Below are positions 28,847-50,724 of a DNA stretch of 64,000 nt, in pieces. Origin of the DNA: Antechinus flavipes (Eukaryota). The notes beneath the pieces were generated by a model. The model was not told the origin of the DNA, did no database searches, and worked only from the letters and a program-made list of their open reading frames with translations. Where the stretch lies: assembly GCF_016432865.1 (NCBI RefSeq), contig NC_067399.1:389670001-389734000 (forward strand). Reading direction: 5' to 3'. Every line of letters starts with the position of its first letter. Position 1 is the first letter of the stretch. A program made the position numbers and the translations under genes.

Positions 28847-29282
28847 TCCACCTTCAGCACTCCTCCCTCCAGGTCATCTTTAGGAGGGCTCTCTTGAGGA
28901 AGACTTGGAATCTGGGTCATCATGGATAGGCAGCACACCTGACTGTATAGTTATCAAGGATAAAGTCAGGCTCTCTTGCCCTATATCCAGCTTCCCCAGA
29001 ATTTTAATTGCCTCAGCTGCTCCAGACCACAGATATTTTCTCCTTGTCCTATACCTGTATCCTTCCTTCTTCCCATCAGCATCTGTGCTTCTAAACTGTG
29101 TGTATGTTCAAACCTGCTTTTTCCACTACTGATTATCCTATGGCATACTTAGTTTCTTATCAATTTGATAATGTAGGAGCTGGCTCCATCACTCAATTTT
29201 ACCAGATGGACTGTAGACTTCCCCCCCACTCTTATCTTTGCCATTACTTACCTACCTAAAAGCCTAGGTTGGTGGAGTGGGG

Positions 29283-30245
29283 ATGAATGTGGAAGAAGGG
29301 GGCATACCGGGCATAGGGCGCCCAAGCCAGGCCCGATGGGTGCTTATGCTTCTTCTGTCCACGACCATGTATGGTGCCCACGCCCCACTGTTGGCCTTGT
29401 GTCGAATAGATGGCCGTGTCCCTTTCCGCCCCTCTTCAGCTGTGCTTTGGACGGAACTGACCAAATTACTGCTATCAGCATTCTCCCTGATGGCCCGGCG
29501 GCAGCCCAGACTGTGGGACTCTCTCCCGTGGCGCCAGGCTGCCCCTTTTGCACTCTCTGCACTGCTCTACGGTGCCAACAATAACCTCGTCATTCACCTG
29601 CAGCGGTATATGGATCCCAGCACCTACCAAGTGATGAGCAACCTCAAGATTGGCAGCACAGCTCTCCTTTACTGCCTCTGCCTGAACCGCCGTCTCTCTG
29701 CCAGACAGGGGCTGGCCCTGCTGCTGCTGACTGGTGCCGGAGCCTGCTATGCCGCCGCAGGCCTGCAGGATCCGCAAGGCCTCCTCCCTCCCCCGCCAGC
29801 TGCGGCCATGCCCCTCCACGTGACCCCCCTGGGGCTGCTGCTGCTGCTCCTCTACTGCCTCATCTCGGGACTCTCCTCAGTCTACACCGAGCTGCTCATG
29901 AAGAGGCAGCGCCTGCCCCTGGCCTTGCAGAACCTGTTCCTGTACTCCTTTGGGGTACTTATGAACTTGGGGCTCTATGTGGGAGGTGGGCCAGGCCCTG
30001 GGCTCCTAGAAGGCTTCTCAGCCTGGGCAGCATTGGTGGTTCTGAGCCAGGCCCTCAATGGACTGCTCATGTCAGCCATCATGAAGCATGGGAGCAGCAT
30101 CACCCGGCTCTTTGTCGTCTCCTCTTCCCTGATTGTCAATGCTGTGCTCTCAGCCACCCTGCTTCACCTCCAGCTCACGGCTGCCTTCTTCCTGGCCCTC
30201 CTGCTTATTGGACTGGCTGTACATCTCTATTATGGAGGCCGGTAG
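29283..30245 (+). CDS. SLC35A4: Probable nucleotide-sugar transporter SLC35A4, 320 aa, intronless main ORF
   Basis: MNVEEGG...ARWVLMLLLSTTMYGAHAPLL...GANNNLVIHLQRYMDPSTYQVMSNLKIGSTA...MKHGSSITRLF; multi-pass hydrophobic pattern. The ORF-track start at 29277 is a GTG; first ATG is 29283. Confidence 0.96.
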   Translation: MNVEEGGIPGIGRPSQARWVLMLLLSTTMYGAHAPLLALCRIDGRVPFRPSSAVLWTELTKLLLSAFSLMARRQPRLWDSLPWRQAAPFALSALLYGANNNLVIHLQRYMDPSTYQVMSNLKIGSTALLYCLCLNRRLSARQGLALLLLTGAGACYAAAGLQDPQGLLPPPPAAAMPLHVTPLGLLLLLLYCLISGLSSVYTELLMKRQRLPLALQNLFLYSFGVLMNLGLYVGGGPGPGLLEGFSAWAALVVLSQALNGLLMSAIMKHGSSITRLFVVSSSLIVNAVLSATLLHLQLTAAFFLALLLIGLAVHLYYGGR

Positions 30246-39182: not shown

Positions 39183-40116
39183 CCATACTTTTTTTCTTTT
39201 ACTTTTTTCTTTTTTTAAATCTATGTTTTCTTTCACAACATGACTGTATATGTATCAGATATCAAATTGCTTGACTTCTCAATGAGAAGGGAGAAAAGAA
39301 GGAGGGAAAGAATGTGGAATTCAAAATTGTAAAAAAAAAATGTTAAAATTGTTTTTACATGCAATTGGAAAAAAAAATTGTGTATGTATATGTATATATC
39401 ATGGAAGTCAGGGTGATTGAAGGGGCATCCCAAGGATGAAATAGTGAGATCGTGGGTCACAGTGAAAAGAAAGTGTTCTAGGGTGAAAGAACTTGGGGTC
39501 AAATTCTGGATCTGACATATACTGCTCTATGTGAACCAGGACAAATCACTTTAAACTCCTTGGACTCTATTTTTCTTATCTTTACTAGAACTAGAGGAAT
39601 TTGGACCAAGATCATGGGATCTCATTCCAACAGATGAATAAATTGAGTCCCCGAAAATTCATTGATCTGCTCATGATAATATAGTTTTAGTGTATCTATG
39701 AAAAAAAGGAAAAAAGAGTAACTGTAAATATTCAGGAAGAAGGGAGGTCTTTGTAAACTATAGTTGAATATTTCCAGAGATAAGATGAAAAAAGAGGAAG
39801 AAAGGGATTGTGTAGGAGGAAGATTAAACTGGCAACGTGGTGGCAGAAAGTAACATAAAAGGGCAATTTTCCACTGACAAATTCTAAAGCTGAGTCACCA
39901 GGATTAGGGTGCAAAAAGATGGAAATTTCCAGAGCAGAAGGCCCTCCCTTCTCCAGAATTTTGTAACATTACACATTCTTCTCCAAACTCCAAGGAACTG
40001 AGAGTAAAAAATCAGAAACTTCCAGTGATGTGTCGAGATCATTAAATAGCTGGTGATACCCAGAAGTAGAACTGAACTTACACAGGTGCCAGCAAGTAAG
40101 GACCTGGCTGTGGTTA

Positions 40117-43100
40117 TCAGAAGCTTGTTTTTAATTTGACTCCTGAAGAACAGGTATGACCCTGAGGCTGTGTCTGTCTGAAATCCTTTTCTTTAAGTAA
40201 AAGGTGTCAGGGCAGATTGCCAGAGCTTAAACTTTTTTTCTCTTCTCTGTGACTTCTGTTGGGAGATAGGGAAGAATCAATGAAGTCCTGTTGGAGGATA
40301 AAGGCTGGCACCCTAGTCTCATCTCCCCTAATACTATTCCTCTGTGGTTCAGGACAGAACTCCAGGACATACTTGTGTCCCTACTTCTATTGTTTTCCCT
40401 ACACTTTTCCTATTCATATTCCTTACCCTGCTGGAGTTGCTTGTTCTGGACTTGGAGTTGTTGGTTCTGTGTGGCCAGAGAAATGGCGTCCTGTAAAACT
40501 CCAGACAACAGGATTCGGTGCTGGAGCTCTCTGGCAGCCGCCTGCTCCTTCCACAGCCCCCGACAAGCCCGGAACACCTGTGCTTTTCATGGGCAGCTTT
40601 ATGGTTAGAAGAATTCCGAGAAATCCCACCACCTATCTATTTAGCTAGGGCTTGAGTGCAGCCTGCCAGTATGAGATGTAGAATGCACAAACAACATCCA
40701 CTACTGACCTGCAGCATGTGGCAGGTCTGGGCCCGGGCTCCTTGCACATGCAGGTCATACAGAGCCTCTAGGTCCCGCTCAGCTGCATCTCGCTCCACTC
40801 TCAGTGCCTCCAGCTTCTGAACCAGGGCTGCATGGTCCTGTGCGATCCGACTCTCAGTGGACAAATCTGGGGCCTGTGATAGAACACAGGTGTTTACTGA
40901 GGGAGAATGAGCCTACTCATCAGCCTTAAAGCTGGAGATCTGGTGCCCATCAATTGGAGAATGGCTGGGTAAATTGTGGTATATGAATGTTATGGAATAT
41001 TATTGTTCTGTAAGGAATGACCTGCAGGATGAATACAGAGAGGCTTGGAGAGACCTACATGAACTGATGCTAAGTGAAATGAGCAGAACCAGGAGATCAT
41101 TATGCACTTCAACAACGATATTGTATGAGGATATATTCTGATGGAAGTGGATTTCTTTGACAAAGAGACCTAACTGAGTTTCAATGGATAAATGATGGAC
41201 AGAAACAGCTACACCCAAAGAAAGAACACTGGGAAACGAATATGAACTATTTGCATTTTTGTTTTTCTTCTTGGGTTATTTATACCTTCTGAACCAATTC
41301 TCCCTGTGCAACAAGAAAACTGTTCAGTTCTGCACACATATATTGTATCTAGGATATACTGCAACATATCTAACATATATAGGACTGCTTGCCATCTAGG
41401 GGAGGGGGTGGAGGGAGGGAGCGGAAAAATCGAAACAGAAGCGAGTGCAAGGGATAATGTTGTAAAAAATTACCCTGACATGTATTCTGTCAATATAAAG
41501 TTATTATTAAATAAAATTAAATTTAAAAAAAAAAGCTGGAGATCTGGGACTAACCTGATGTTTTGCTATTTCCTTGTCCTGTCCCATCCAGCTCAGCTCC
41601 TCTTGGATCTGGGATCGGTGATGTTCCTGGAGCAGCTGCCTATGGGCCCGAGCTAACATAAACTGCAGGGCCACATCAGGGGCCTGTGAGACAGAACCAG
41701 GAGGACTTACATCCTAGTTTTTTCATCTGACCAAGTTCCATTTTCCTCTCCCTTAGAACAGGGGTATTTAATCTGAGATCCATTATATTTTAGATGTCTG
41801 TGAATTTGGATGAGGAAAAAACATTACATATTTATTTTCATTAATTGTTAACTGAATCTTAGCATTTCCTTCAATTATGAAGGTAGGCAACAAATCTCAA
41901 GCTTCACCAGATTGTCAGATTGGTACCACGACACAAAGAAGGTTTAAGAATTCCTGTTCTGGTGATATACAAATGTTTTGCATAATTTCAAATGTATCAT
42001 CGGTATCATGTTGCTTGCTTTCTCAAAAGAGGAGGGGAGGGAAGAAAAGAGAGGAAGAAGTAGAATTTGAAACAAACAAACAAAAAAGAATATTAAAAAT
42101 AAACCTAAAGTTTACTTAGATTTAAAAAAAAAATTCCTGCCTAACTTCCCCATTGGGGTCTATTGGTCTTCCCCAGTACAAGGTTCCCAATTCCAATTAC
42201 TGTCCATACCCCAGATTTAGGGGATTCAGCACTACAGGCAGTGCATTCCTGGGCAATAAAATCATAACTACAGTTTAAGAGAAATGGGAGGTAGGAACTA
42301 AAAGAAGAGGCATTGTGGTCAGACCTCTGTATTGAAGTCCCAAGAACCTAAATCTATATGTCTATTCCTTTATTTACTACTTAGTTAGTCTCAGGAAAAT
42401 AACTTAATCTCTATTGTTCTCGATTTCCTTATCTGGAGAAAATGAGATTGGACTAGATTATCTAAAAGGCTCTTTTTAGCTCTAAATCCTGTGGTCCAAT
42501 AAATGATCACCTGTTCCTGATCATCACCACTCTCACCTAGATAAAGCAGTGGGACTTCCTCTCCCTCTTCCATAACTCAACCTGCTCCTTTGTGATTCCT
42601 TTCCTCCTTTTAGACTTCATGGTATTTATTTTAACCAAATTTCTCTCCCAGGAAGGGACATTACACAATGCCATTTGCCTTCTAGGGAACCCCCATGTAC
42701 TCCCTATAGAAACAAATGAAGCTTTGCCTGTTTCTTGGAGCTCCCAACAGTATAGTTTCTTGTTGCTGCCGGCAGGGATGACTTCCTTCCCAGGTCCAGA
42801 GTTTCTGAAGTGCCTGCTGCCAAAGAGAAATATTTTTATTCTAGGCAAAGACAGACAATCTGAGGAATCCCAAGGAAATAGTGTCTGGCATATAGACTTG
42901 AAACTCACCTTGAAGATGCTTCTTGAAAACAGAGGGAAAGGCCTCTTCTAGTTCTAGCACCTAAATAGGCAATGGGTTGTAATGTAACAAAGCCTTCTCT
43001 CAAGGATGGAGAGATTTTCATTTTAGTGCAAAAGGTTTGTTTTAAGCAATTATAAATATCACTAAGATATAATTGATAACTTTGAAAAGAAAGGATTCTA

Positions 43101-46100
43101 ATGTGACAACATACAAACAACAATAACAAACTTTTAAAAAGTTTAAGAATGCTGATCAACAGATGCCATGATTTATCTTGACTCCAGAGGACTCATGATA
43201 AAACAGGCTGACCACTTCCTGACCAGAGATGAAAAAATGAAGGCCCATATTGCAACACATTTTTGTAGACATGTCCAAAGCAGGTATTTGTTATGACTTT
43301 TAAATGGACTGCTTTAAGGCAGAGGCAGCTTGGTCTAGTGGACAGAGTGCTGGATTTGCAGTCTATAACACCTGGGTTCAAATCCTACAGTGACAAGCTG
43401 GGCCACGATGCCTAAAATACTTAATATTGCTGAGCCTCCTAAGGCAAATTTGTGTAAATTATAAACAGGTTAAGTATATCTCCTTTGTATACTTTAAATA
43501 ACAGGAAATTCTGCTAAAAATTGTTTTGTTTGTCTTTCCTTTTTCAATGGGGAATAAGTGGGAAGGGAGAGAAAGTGAATTCTTGTTAATTGAAAAAATG
43601 AAATTAAATTTAAAAAGTAAGGAATAAGATGATGAGATCAGATGTTAGGTTGCAATAATATTCAGAATACTTATCTTTTTTCCTTCAAGATAAACAAGTA
43701 TCCAAATAAATAGTTATTAGTGTATTGAAGTTTGAGTATAGTGTTTGAGATAAACGCAGGACTAAAAGGAATACCTCGTAAACCTAGGAAGGAACATAGT
43801 AGGGAAACATCTTTCAAAGAAGATGGAGATCTAGGAATACCTTAGGTGGTATATGTACTCCTGGCCATACTCTTTACTTCCCCTTGAAAATTTGAAACTT
43901 GTTACTGTTCACTGAAGTCTTTGACCTCTGATTCTTTGAAACAGAACTTTATATCACAAAAATCCCTGCTGCAATAGAAAATAGAATTTTCCATTAAATA
44001 TATAAAGGAGATAGACTTTTAACATATAATTTACACAGATTGCCTGAGGAGGTTCAGCAATATTGTGTCTTAGGCATGATGGCCCACTTTGTCACTGTAA
44101 GATTTAGAACCCGGATGTTTTAAACTGCAAGTCCAGCATTCTGTCCACAAGACCAAGCTACCACTGCCTTAAAATAGACCATTTTTAAAAAGCCATAGTA
44201 AAGTGTTCCTCTTTGTATCCCTAGTGGTTGCTTGTCCTCTTGCCTACTTCTAGTTCTGTACCAGCTTTGGAATCAAGTGCATTGTGAAAGGATGCTGTAA
44301 GAAGAATAAAGAGCCTGCGCCCCAGAGCCAACTTGTGTGCATTGTGATGAGATGCCCATCTCAAGGTGGAGGAAACTGGAGCCAGATACCTGCAGCTTTG
44401 GAAGCCTGGTTACAGAAGCTCCAGCCTGCTTGAGCATCCTGGTCTCCCAGCTCCGGCTTTGGTTTTTCAGTACCTGTAAATAGCAGGTTCAGTGCATAAT
44501 TTTCAGAGCCCCCAATACCCCACATGGAGGGCTGGTGCCTGGTTCTTTCTCACCTTCAATTCCCTGAGCACCAGGCTCAGCTGAGTAAGCTGGCTCTCCT
44601 GTAGAGCTGTTCCAGAGAGCTCAGAACGCAGGGCCTGAACAGTGGCGTAGCGGGTGTGGATTTCTTCTGAAGCATCCCACAGTGTGGGAGAAATCTGCTT
44701 CCCCTGGCGGGGGTCCCGAACTCCTTCGGCCCCTGCTAGCGAGGCCAGGAGCAGACCCAAGGGGATGGCTGCCAGAGAATACAGGCAGGCAGTGGGGCCA
44801 CTTTAGGTGAGGGGGGGGGGGGCTTTAATATAGTCAAAGAACAATCCTGTCCCCTCCTCCCAACCTCTCTTGCCAAGAATCACACTGAGCAGCCTCTTTC
44901 CACAAGACTAGCACTGAGTAAGAAGCCTGGATGAGGAGAAATGCAGAGGCCGAAGCAGGATTTGGGAGCAGAACTTCCTGGTGACTCTCCCCAGAAAGGA
45001 TTAAGTCTCATTTCCTGTCTTTTTTTCCTACCCTCCCTTCCTTCCTTCATACCTCGGAGATCCAAGAGAAGCAACAGGCTGTTGTAACTATTTCCAAAGA
45101 GTAACTGAGTCATGATCCAAGGCAAGGAGCCGGTATGGGCCTTGGAAGCCTTCCCTGCCAGTACCAGCAATAAGGGGCAGTCCCTACAAAGAGTGATGGC
45201 TAAGGTCAGGCACAGCTTAGGTCCTTGTTATGGGTTAGGGAGAATAACTGCCCCTTATGTGGAAACCTCAAGCTGCTGCCCTGGGCTTCCCCCCAAGTTG
45301 GACTCACAGAGCTTCTGGAAGCTGCAAAACTCTCAGTGAGCCCCTCCACATGCTCTGGCCCAGGGCCTCTTTATGGTACTGGGCCCCAGGCAGGATATTG
45401 TCAAGGTAAGAAGGGAGCAGGCTCTGGAAGAGAAGATGGTTAAGTTTGTGGCATTTCTTCTTAGATTGATCTCTAAGTTTGTATCTCCTTCTCTCATCCT
45501 TTCTGCCAGAGTCCACAGGTTCATATACCTGTCCAAGCCTTCCATTGCCCTGAGATAAAGTTGGCAGCCAGATTTGGAATCTAGGATCTCTGCTTCACTC
45601 GCTCCTTCTGCTACTCTGGGGAAAAAAGGGAAAAATATAAGTTTGACGTGTTTCTGGACTCTGTCCCTCTGCCATAGGACCCTTCAAAGCATTAAATCCC
45701 AGACATAAGAACAAAATGAGCAGGTAACCCATAGTCACATAGACAGACTAAGCCTGAATAGGACANNNNNNNNNNNNNNNNNNNNNNNNNNNNNNNNNNN
45801 NNNNNNNNNNNNNNNNNNNNNNNNNNNNNNNNNNNNNNNNNNNNNNNNNNNNNNNNNNNNNNNNNNNNNNNNNNNNNNNNNNNNNNNNNNNNNNNNNNNN
45901 NNNNNNNNNNNNNNNNNNNNNNNNNNNNNNNNNNNNNNNNNNNNNNNNNNNNNNNNNCCACAGAACAAAACCCAGTAGTAAGGCTGTTGTCAGAATGGGG
46001 AGGAAGGAAGAGCAGTACTAAGAAAAGATATTCACATCCTGGACAAAGTAGCATACTTACAGACCCAGTGGGGACACATCCAGGAAATTCAGGTCGCTAG

Positions 46101-47352
46101 TTCCAGGTAGTAATAAGTCTCGACCCCTCCCGCTAGAAGTGAGCTAGGGGAAAGTGCAAGGGATAAATCTGTGTTGAACTCATAAAAATCTTCCAAATCC
46201 TGGAGAATACTTTCCAGGACTCCTCAATTCCTGAAAATTACTTTTAATCTCTTTTCACCTGCACTAGACTTAGGGTCCGGAGGGAAGGTTCAGAAGCACT
46301 TTGGAGTTGAGTTTCCTCAAACAGCATTGCCAGCAGCTGGAAATTATTAGGGTAGGGGTGGAGTGGGGATTAGAGAAAAGATTGTTTCAGAGTCCAAACA
46401 AATCCAGACTATATGGTAAGACAAAGTGGATTCTTGATCGTCACCTGAGGTACCAGATCCAGTTGCTTGGCTTCTCTGCCCCTAATGATTACAGACACAC
46501 TGTAACCTTTGGATACTGAGCCCAGCACAGCCCGAATGTTCTCCAGAAACTCTTGCTCTGCTTCCTAAATTAATAGGCAGGAGCTCACCTTTTTGGAGAA
46601 AGAAATCATCTATCTCCCTGTTCCACCAGGTCCCTAGATCTTCAGCTTTGATTACCCTAGTCTTTTACCCTAGTCTTTCTTTGTTCCAGCCCATGTTCCC
46701 CTCCTCTCCCCACAACAATATTCTCAAAATTGTTTCAAGAGCAGTATAAGGTATGATGTTAGGAACCAACAGAATGAGGCAAGTGGGACAAGAGCTTGCC
46801 ACCCATGCCCTCCCCCCTTTCTCCCCTCTCCCACTTTCTTATTCTACCTGTGCATGTTCTGGGCCTAGGACTCGGTCAAATGTGAATTGATGCTCCTAGA
46901 TGCAAGACCAGAGTCATGAAGATCATTTCCCATTTACAGCCTCTTTTTCCTCCATCCATTTTCCCCACCTTTCCCGATCCCAACAATACCAGATTCTCAG
47001 GTTCTCCTAGATCTAGCAAGAGCATTTTAGGACCATGTAGAAGGAATCTGAGGCTTCGGGTGTCATGACCTGTAATAGAGAGTTCACTGTAACATTCTGG
47101 TTTTGTTTTTTTGTTTTTTCATGTTGACAGGAGAAAACAGCCCCAGCCTACTACTTGCAGGATTCCTTCTAGGCTTGACCTCTTAGAAGGAATTTCTCAC
47201 CTGCCTCTGACAAGGATGTTGCTTTTACAACCACTGTTACCGTTGCAGATCCAACCTGAAGGGAGAGAAGATAATGAGACCTAGGCTCCGAGCCTGAGCC
47301 AATAGGAAGGTTCGGAGGGCAAGTTTCTGCTCACCTGCTCACTGCCAGCCAT
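40117..47352 (-). CDS. Kinesin-motor-like (P-loop-less) / coiled-coil protein, probable orthologue of mouse E230025N22Rik; 18 exons, one frameshift (about 554 aa if corrected, 219 aa as written)
   Basis: Exons 47352-47335 (MAGSEQ), 47255-47201, 47069-46990, 46895-46848 (EHQFTFDRVLGPEHAQ), 46564-46445 (VSKGYSVSVIIRG), 46336-46259, 46143-46061, 45615-45529, 45423-45308 (frameshift), 45183-45053 (GSLPWIMTQLLFGNSY), 44768-44554, 44473-44390, 42960-42909, 42536-42511, 41683-41555 (APDVALQF), 40873-40709, 40577-40427 and a tentative last exon 40142-40117. All AG/GT flanked; phases match at every junction except across exon 9. Confidence 0.8.
40928..41547 (+). mobile_element. Young 5'-truncated L1 (40944-41531) with perfect 16-bp TSD
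   Basis: AAAGCTGGAGATCTGG at 40928-40943 and 41532-41547; TT/AAAG endonuclease site; A-tail; highly similar to the reverse complement of 2421-3010. Confidence 0.95.
45766..45957. other. Assembly gap (192 N)
   Basis: Run of N inside the intron between kinesin-like exons 7 and 8. Confidence 1.
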
Positions 47353-47619
47353 GATTCCGGAGTCTCTAGGAGTCTACTCAATAATTCATGACCCATCTGG
47401 TGGTTTCAGGGCGGGGTTTGCTATCCCCCAATCAGTATCCAACAGGATATTTTTCAGATCGCCTATGTCTGGTCTCTCAGTATTCTACTTCTGTTACCCC
47501 TAAGTCTTCAAGTTCTCAATACAATTGATTCCACACACATGTCTTCCCTAGGGAAGTAAAGTCAGAATTTCTAGATAAAGAAAAAAAAAGGGGGGGGGAG
47601 AGGAAAAGAGGTTCATCCC

Positions 47620-48650: not shown

Positions 48651-50724
48651 TCAGGCAAATCTTCTGACCCTGCACAGCAGCACGAAGGCTGCGGTCCCAA
48701 AGACCTGAAAGGCTAGCGGGGAGCCCACGAAGGGCCTGCTCCCACGGGAAGGAACCGACTCTGCACACTCCTCTGGCGCTTGCTCCCTTCGCGACCTGGC
48801 TAAGGCGCTGCTTTGGGTAAAGGGGTTTCCTTCGAGGACCAGCTCGGTCACCTGGTCTAGGGTCGGCTGCTTCGTCAGCAGGTTGTGGCTTAGGTCCAGC
48901 TGCTGTAGCCTTTGTGGCAGAGACTTCGGCACACACTTCAGCTTTGCGTGGGACAAGTTAAGGGATGTCAGGGTGGGTGGCCAGGTACATTGAGTGGAGG
49001 GCGTATCGCGCAGCTCGTTGTAACTGATGTCCAGCCGCTGCACTTTGACCCCCCTCGCCTCCAGAGCCCCGCACACTCCTCCCAGGGACTGGAGGCTGGT
49101 GTTCCTAAGCGCCAGGTCCCGCAGCTCCTGGAACTCCTTGAGGCAGAGGGCCGCGGTTAAGCCACTCTCTCCTATTGCTGGGTTGTCCGACAGATCTAGA
49201 GAGCTTAATTCCTTGAAGGTGCCCAAGTTCGAGCAGGGCACACTGCTCAGGCCCGAATCAGTCAAGCTCAGCGTCTTCAGTCCAGGTTTTAGCCAAGTCA
49301 GTATCGCTGCCATTAGATCGCCCTCTCCAGCTGGCGACACTCTGTTGAGCTTCAAGGCTTTCAGGGCCAGGGCGTGATCACTGGGAGATCGCGGTTGGAG
49401 AGGCGGGTGCGAAACCCCCAGGTCTTCCAGCGACAACTCCTGGGTCCGCGTATAGGTCAGCGCCTGCAGGAGCTGGTACAGAAGTGGGGCCGGCACCTGG
49501 GCATCCTTTAGCTTCAGCCGTTTCAGGCGCAGCGATCGCAGCAAGTCTGCTGCTTGTCTGGGGTCGGCAAGGCCGCCTTTCGGCAAAAAGATATCCAAGT
49601 TGTGGCCGCCCCCGTGGATCTCCACCTCCACAGACGAAAGGCACATCTGAAGACTATTCCAATTGGGTTCCGGGGTGGAAAAATTGCAGAAGCAATTATC
49701 GCCCTCTTCGTCCAGGATACAAATGGCTGAGGATGGCCAGGGAAGCAACAGCAGGGGAGAGAGCAGCAGTAGCAGCAGCGGCAGCGACAACCTCTGCCAG
49801 GGGACCTGGGAATGACATCAGCTGTTTAATCTCAAGGCTAGCTAGTCGGGTGCTGGGGAAAGTGGAGAAGCAGAGGAGCGGGAATGGTGAAGTATTAGTG
49901 CTGAGGTCCACGAGGAGAGCCCAAGGAGGTTGGAGTCACAGATGGGTGTGGCAAAATTTCTCAAAAGAATTTCCACACTTGCCCCATCTCCGAGTCAAGG
50001 GGCAAAGTTTATTGTAATTGTAAAGTCAATTGTAGAAGGCTAAGTTCCTAAAGGATTTAGCAAAGAACCCCGGGCTTGGGACAAATTTATCCAGTTCTTA
50101 AAGTAGATGATATGCTAATTTTATAGCCCTGAGATAGAATTGAGGAGCATCTATTCACTATTGTCTCAGAATTTGGTTGTCACTGACTAGTAGTTTCTCT
50201 TTATCTGTCAGTATTGTTTGTAGGACTATTCTAAAGCCAGAAGATCTTAGAATCTTTGACAGACAGATTGTTAGAACAAAAACACTCTAAGGTGGGGGGA
50301 ACTCATCACTACAGTTTCCCCTAGAAGCATTAGGACCTATTTTGACCTCAGAACCCAGCCCAAAGACTTCATTTTCTCTTTTTCTCAAATATTATCTTTA
50401 CCCAATCTTCTCCCATCCTCCCACTTTACAACCCTAGCTAAACAGCTCCAGACCAGCACTGAAAACTTTAGGCTTTGGGAGAGGTACAGATAGAAAGGTG
50501 GACCCGGAATCCAGAGGATAGCCTCAGACACTTCCCAGGTGTGTCACTCTGTTTACCTCAGGTCCTCATCAGTAAAATCATTTTAAAATGAACTAGAGAA
50601 GGAAATGGCAAGCCACTGGAGTATCTTTGCCAAAACAAACAAAAACCCAAATGAGATCATAAAAGAGTCGAACACAGTTAACAACAAAAGTCGGGGGTAA
50701 AGGAAGACATAGAACACTCACCAT
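48651..50724 (-). CDS. CD14: Monocyte differentiation antigen CD14, 385 aa
   Basis: ATG-only first coding exon at 50724-50722 (CCACCATG|GTGAGT), 916-nt intron, exon 2 49805-48651. Signal peptide, CILDEEGDNCFCNFSTPEPNW N-terminus, LRRs (LSSLDLSDNP, LRDLALRNT, VQRLDISYNEL, LTSLNLSHAKL) and hydrophobic C-terminus. Confidence 0.96.

Follow-up and report, generated by a model that had tools for sequence, protein, structure and literature searches.

The stretch of DNA considered here, hereafter the window, covers 64,000 nucleotides (nt) of the genome of Antechinus flavipes (contig NC_067399.1, positions 389,670,001 to 389,734,000 of the forward strand), and its minus strand carries, between 47352 and 40227, a gene of 18 exons of 18-215 nt each (Table 1). 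Short open segments lie between AG and GT on the minus strand of 40000-47500, and their chaining from the ATG at 47352, guided by isoform X2 of LOC141556791 of the fat-tailed dunnart, Sminthopsis crassicaudata (XP_074147666.1, here P0138), gives the strings VTVVVK, FTFDRVLGP and SKGYSVSVIIRGREAKQL as well as coiled-coil strings. The resulting reading frame comprises 575 codons and contains no further stop, once an X is placed at a frameshifted codon in exon 9. Judged from its sequence, the locus is the orthologue of E230025N22Rik, a single-copy mammalian gene that is widely annotated and uncharacterised. The best explanation, which can be given a probability of about 0.7, joins this orthology with an N-terminal domain that most likely derives from a kinesin motor, has lost its ATP-binding parts and is followed by a helical tail.

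Projected on the dunnart locus, all 18 exons of the window have the same phase and splice sites, and the same length with the exception of exon 9 (116 vs 117 nt). The translation of the projected dunnart coding sequence is exactly XP_074147666.1, to which the reading of the window is identical at 525 of 575 residues (91%). Seven exon sizes (120/78/83/87/117/84/52) recur unchanged in a felid orthologue, the remaining exons being within a few codons, and the dunnart projection together with these felid sizes places the exon structure far beyond chance. The neighbourhood is also shared, since the dunnart locus adjoins a leucine-rich repeat (LRR) gene resembling CD14, as in the window, and the felid orthologue adjoins SLC35A4 and APBB3. 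The two marsupial copies differ in one A of exon 9, which is missing in the window, and in intron 15, which is about 600 nt longer there.

The initial annotation had described 18 minus-strand exons of 18-215 nt placed between SLC35A4 and CD14, and both the exon set, through the dunnart projection, and the position, through the flanking open reading frames (ORFs), are borne out; the sequence marks it quoted are all present in the spliced reading. Its frame of about 554 codons gives way to the computed 575, and its 3' end at 40117 finds no support, the orthologue-supported last exon being 40255-40227. The matching phases that it reported hold against dunnart at every exon but exon 9 as assembled. 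Similarly, its canonical splice sites hold for the 16 introns that are GT-AG, whereas intron 14 is GC-AG, every acceptor being AG. This GC donor (CAG/GCAAAG, 42727-42726; dunnart locus L001, 7650-7651) is kept in both species.

Table 1. Exons of the E230025N22Rik orthologue, assembly gap and flanking reading frames in the window.
Feature	Position	Strand	Length (nt)	Remarks
Exon 1	47335..47352	-	18	ATG 47352-47350; MAGSEQ; GT donor; dunnart exon equal in size
Exon 2	47201..47255	-	55	beta1-like strand VTVVVK, paired by HMMER with kinesin beta1
Exon 3	46990..47069	-	80	
Exon 4	46848..46895	-	48	EHQFTFDRVLGPEHAQ; aligned with kinesin F-x-FD-x-VF
Exon 5	46445..46564	-	120	GYSVSVIIRGREAKQ at the place of the kinesin P-loop; 11-residue gap in HMMER vs KIFC3 TGAGKTYTMEG
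Exon 6	46259..46336	-	78	equal in size to cat-family orthologue
Exon 7	46061..46143	-	83	phase 2 at end
Assembly gap (N)	45766..45957	.		within intron 7; coding sequence not expected
Exon 8	45529..45615	-	87	
Exon 9	45308..45423	-	116	117 in dunnart and cat-family species; A missing at 45354; TGA 45335-45333
Exon 10	45053..45183	-	131	family-invariant motifs CPLL-VLAG, GSLPWI
Exon 11	44554..44768	-	215	end of motor-like domain and neck helix; 94% identity to dunnart protein
Exon 12	44390..44473	-	84	
Exon 13	42909..42960	-	52	
Exon 14	42728..42813	-	86	GC donor follows, also in dunnart
Exon 15	41555..41683	-	129	helical
Exon 16	40709..40873	-	165	coiled-coil-like (LVQKLEALRVERDAAERDLEALY)
Exon 17	40427..40577	-	151	coiled-coil-like (NQQLQVQNKQLQQ); AlphaFold confidence (pLDDT) 85-96
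Exon 18	40227..40255	-	29	EVTEKRKKV and TAA stop 40229-40227; dunnart C-terminus EVTERRKKV
Nucleotide-sugar transporter ORF (Nuc_sug_transp, SLC35A4-like)	29277-30245	+		
LRR protein ORF (CD14-like)	48651-49790	-		

The run of N in the assembly falls wholly within intron 7 (46060-45616), and its flanks match the corresponding dunnart intron (541 nt) at 1-116 and 391-538, with order and orientation kept. Exon 7 takes the base that it lacks at its end from exon 8, and the orthologous protein is unbroken over the junction of the two exons (…SPLGL/VAEGASE…). Nothing suggests that coding sequence is hidden in the gap.

With exon 11 (71 residues) as query, an exhaustive search by HMMER matches the full-length predicted proteins P0001 (94%, S. 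crassicaudata LOC141556791, E=1.8e-31), P0003 (73%), P0006 from a felid and P0009 from UniParc, and two database searches extend the family to more than 190 protein clusters from marsupials and eutherians. The marsupial members, named "uncharacterized protein LOC…" as are many eutherian ones, come from dunnart, koala, monito del monte, sugar glider, tammar, opossum, bilby and brushtail possum. UniRef names the rodent members (Mus spicilegus, Jaculus, Peromyscus) "Riken cDNA E230025N22 gene", in agreement with the mouse counterpart given in the initial annotation, and attaches "Kinesin motor domain-containing protein" to the orthologues of two whales. The description of the gene as hidden does not hold, as considerably more than a hundred mammals have it annotated, eight isoforms being given in a close relative.

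In the gene tree, marsupials (support 100/100) and eutherians (100/98) form separate clades and most eutherian orders are recovered, as is expected of a vertically inherited single-copy gene; the therian age proposed earlier is thus upheld by 100% support for each clade and by a tree that matches the mammalian orders. P0009 is placed outside the therians on a long branch, and a search with this outgroup as query yielded no named relative among monotremes or outside the mammals. By its phylogenetic distribution the gene is at least of therian age, and its origin is likely older.

The kinesin likeness of the N-terminal ~300 residues emerges from profile searches, those against PDB covering 177,635 sequences. 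Kinesins account for four of four matches of the full-length family profile, for six of seven matches of a domain-only profile and, as KIF14, for five of six collinear matches of a profile of the C-terminal half (E=0.28). The best solved structure is KIFC3 (5wde, E=0.0016 with the full-length profile), followed by KIF14, KIF13B, cut7 and kinesin heavy chain. In Pfam, Kinesin (PF00225) is the family with the most member matches (15 of the 57 proteins scanned; best E=5e-4, all below threshold), and Microtub_bd, its relative for the N-terminal part, is matched by 7 of the 57 (best E=1.2e-4), including residues 47-119 of P0138. Among the 100 nearest protein-language-model clusters about 95 carry PF00225, a figure to be read with the caveat that in the same atlas ten neighbours from a single family are reached by one third of shuffled proteins as well.

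The register of these alignments is consistent along the domain. The beta1-like strand is aligned with VVVRV, FTFDRVLGP with F-x-FDKVF-x-P, and GYSV-x-LLLRG with GFNVCIFAYGQ, after which an 11-residue gap stands opposite TGAGKTYTMEG. Further on, LLQMLFEE falls on the helix that follows the P-loop, RACSLLTLT on SSRSHSVFTLV of KIF14, and GSLPWIVS-LLEGNNYSGLLL on STLTWLLKESLGGNSKTAMIA, so that GSLPWIV..LEGN pairs with STLTWLL..LGGN of KIF14. The family therefore resembles the kinesin motor domain in a collinear series made of beta1, FxFDxV(F/L), GY(N/S)-x-(T/S), LLxxLFEE, RACS and LEGN/LFGN in place of LGGN. A template-free AlphaFold model of low confidence likewise shows strands and helices in kinesin order. 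The motor-like domain without a P-loop that the initial annotation had recognised is thus matched by a weak but consistent resemblance, and kinesin ancestry of these ~300 residues appears probable.

The same alignments indicate what the family would have lost. The patterns of Walker A (G....GK[ST]) and of the switch regions (SSR[ST]H and D[LIV]AG[ST]E) occur in none of 159 family proteins, and the aligned switch positions are occupied by RACS (switch I) and by QLPEA/VLAGK (switch II). The string LLVLAGKA is one candidate for switch II, but HMMER and the AlphaFold strand order would put beta7/switch II at RVLQLPEA instead. In the weak alignment with KIF14, the beta7-like strand and the alpha5-like GSLPWIV lie only about 17 residues apart. 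In kinesins, about 45 residues lie between beta7 and alpha5; most of alpha4/L12 (~30 residues) therefore seems to be missing, which is a mild argument against canonical microtubule binding. The family thus differs from the kinesin motor domain in its deleted P-loop, in the absence of switch I and II motifs, in its apparently short alpha4/L12 stretch and in scores below the Pfam threshold. In P0114, the E230025N22Rik protein of Mus spicilegus, the P-loop region GYNTTLLLQGQETEAPR is nearer to kinesin GYN-x-T-IFAYGQ than is the marsupial GYSVSVIIRGRE, and the same P-loop deletion is present.

A switch I look-alike is met at the boundary of intron 8 and exon 9, where the 3' end of the intron read together with the exon gives FSSRAC, resembling kinesin SSRSH. 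This intron (45424-45528; dunnart L001 4927-5031) measures 105 nt, a multiple of three, and lacks in-frame stops in both species, so that its retention would insert 35 residues and leave the frame intact. However, it diverges like the other introns (91%, with mostly non-synonymous changes) and FSSRAC is accordingly likely to be a translated polypyrimidine tract. An exon 9 starting at the acceptor 45459 (RRNATNLTIFSSRAC) was rejected on the same ground for its "FSS", and because every orthologous model uses 45423.

Several results weigh against a kinesin-derived, functional protein at this locus. As assembled, the reading frame is not intact, owing to a one-base deletion in exon 9. None of the 57 family members scanned reaches the curated Pfam cut-off for Kinesin, so that the Pfam/HMMER check envisaged at the outset gives weak, consistent kinesin matches and none at that level; P0001, P0003, P0006 and P0009 taken singly have no Pfam Kinesin match at E<=10, single exons have none in Pfam, and the matches of the C-terminal-half profile are not significant alone. 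The confidence of AlphaFold, expressed as the predicted local distance difference test (pLDDT), is low, with 55 for the full-length protein and 48 for the domain only, and neither Foldseek against PDB, run twice, nor VIA-align finds a kinesin match for the N-terminal domain; the structural check does not confirm a kinesin fold. In the literature found, E230025N22Rik appears in expression tables and outlier lists only, and no functional study is among them: it is listed, for instance, with low expression in uterine epithelium (PMC8967306) and as an outlier in hares with a ratio of non-synonymous to synonymous substitution rates (dN/dS) above 1 (PMC6065068), so that some lineages may be under relaxed or positive selection.

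Foldseek and VIA-align return generic helical matches only, for tail residues ~300-575, and AlphaFold predicts the C-terminal tail as long helices whose pLDDT rises to 96 near the terminus, which agrees with the C-terminal coiled coil of the initial annotation.

The lesion in exon 9, which reads GGGCCAG-AGCATG where dunnart has GGGCCAGAAGCATG, raises the alternative that the missing A is real and that the gene of A. flavipes is a recently inactivated pseudogene, whose protein would end after ~220 residues. The deletion is visible in the window and the TGA follows eight codons further on; no full-length protein of the species itself is found among the matches, the nearest being that of Sminthopsis at 91-94%, and P0002, which shares 89% identity with exon 11, is a model cut short at 235 residues. 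Against this stands the fact that the disruption is the single one in 1,727 coding bases and that the 358 codons downstream of the break contain no stop and keep a dN/dS of 0.30, which makes recent inactivation an unlikely account. The estimates, obtained by the Nei-Gojobori method between window and dunnart with a bootstrap range, give the dN/dS that the initial annotation had proposed to calculate as 0.26 overall (0.18-0.38) at a dS of 0.15, with 0.16 in codons 1-300 (the motor-like part) and 0.36 in the tail. Since the remainder is intact and dN/dS is low, an error of assembly or else a lesion of very recent date is likelier than an old pseudogene, and a single-base error is plausible in a draft assembly that contains N gaps. 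Exact-product look-ups returned no record, either for the ORF truncated in exon 9 or for P0138.

A different objection concerns the ancestry of the domain, which could be unrelated to kinesins if the matches were due to chance or to convergence on a common alpha/beta pattern, the protein then consisting of a novel globular domain and a coiled coil. The Pfam Kinesin matches all lie below the gathering score, the best PDB E-value is 0.0016, the structure searches are devoid of kinesins and the neighbourhoods of shuffled proteins lessen the value of the language-model atlas. Nevertheless, three profiles (full length, domain and C-terminal half) match almost solely kinesins, in register and collinearly from beta1 to the LGGN-like positions, no Pfam family is matched by more members than Kinesin, and the order of the secondary-structure elements agrees with that of kinesins; an unrelated origin is accordingly improbable.

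By its pattern of substitutions and indels, the locus is a real conserved coding gene under purifying selection. Compared with dunnart, the coding exons contain no indel beyond the deletion of exon 9, whereas the introns contain many, and hydrophobic and glycine/proline positions are invariant in the family alignment. A non-coding or spurious locus, with predicted proteins that are annotation artefacts passed between genomes, could be argued from family names that are all "uncharacterized" or "hypothetical", from models that often disagree at their 5' ends and in skipped exons and from the lack of functional studies noted above, but is highly improbable in view of dN/dS values of 0.16-0.36, an open frame of ~500-600 codons that marsupials, eutherians and the outgroup sequence all retain, conserved intron positions and phases, invariant hydrophobic-core positions and exons free of the indels found in introns.

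If the product of the gene in the window is the kinesin derivative favoured here, its 575 residues would comprise a motor-like domain and a long helical, coiled-coil-like tail. The N-terminal ~300-residue domain would descend from a kinesin motor in which the P-loop was lost through the 11-residue deletion, switch I and switch II are no longer recognisable as motifs and most of alpha4/L12 has probably disappeared. Such a protein would presumably be unable to hydrolyse ATP or to walk, and it may serve, probably as a dimer, in a structural or adaptor role without catalysis.

Known parallels are found in yeast, where Vik1 and Cik1 carry kinesin-derived domains without a nucleotide-binding site on a coiled coil and pair with the kinesin-14 Kar3. 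They offer a precedent for a non-catalytic kinesin-like partner, common descent not being implied; in contrast to them, in which the motor-homology domain is C-terminal, it is N-terminal in the E230025N22Rik family, where a pairing through the coiled coil would draw on the long C-terminal helix predicted here. KIF26A/B and KIF7/Costal2 are catalytically impaired kinesins of animals that serve as scaffolds or regulators and not as transport motors. Unlike the E230025N22Rik family, they have a full Pfam kinesin score and a P-loop-like sequence.

By analogy with Vik1, the gene could tentatively be regarded as an unclassified, approximately 46th member of the mammalian kinesin superfamily. Its motor would have been ATP-dead already when marsupials and eutherians parted, possibly even in pre-therian times, and purifying selection would have preserved it as a partner or regulator, itself non-catalytic, of a true kinesin or some other cytoskeletal complex; this extension is doubtful. 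The gene may also have been lost in some lineages.

The gene is not new, being annotated across mammals and never studied. It is a conserved, fast-evolving single-copy gene that seems to be a kinesin relic without ATPase motifs, yet under purifying selection, and if this is true the few kinesin-like proteins listed as non-catalytic gain an example from animals. For mouse E230025N22Rik the analysis provides a testable hypothesis, namely a protein that dimerises, does not bind nucleotides and may have partners. The A. flavipes genome gains an exact 18-exon model, the placing of the gap in an intron and a base in exon 9 that is suspect. The gene is of moderate value as a starting point for kinesin biology and ordinary as genome annotation.

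Other observations concern the introns and the 3' part of the gene. Intron 15 measures 681 nt in the window and 77 nt in dunnart; the additional ~600 nt (~40930-41540), with an A-run at the end (~41525-41534), resemble a lineage-specific retroelement insertion. Intron 12 holds, by eye, two short copies of tRNA-like or short interspersed element (SINE)-like elements in opposite orientation (~43326-43420 and ~44075-44170). In intron 10, a run of ~12 G at 44808-44820 lies just upstream of exon 11, a homopolymer of the kind that is a typical site of length errors in draft assemblies. The acceptor of exon 17 (40577-40582) has a second AG 5 nt upstream (gaaaag/CACAG/GTG), the use of which shifts the frame and gives the C-termini (HRCSG…) of the koala X2 and of old opossum models, due either to a tandem-acceptor isoform or to a mis-prediction. 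Finally, 6-8% of the words sampled from 40400-45765 of the window recur in four runs that are presumably RNA and come from two other organisms (X17-X20), a sharing that could reflect expressed exons or repeats.

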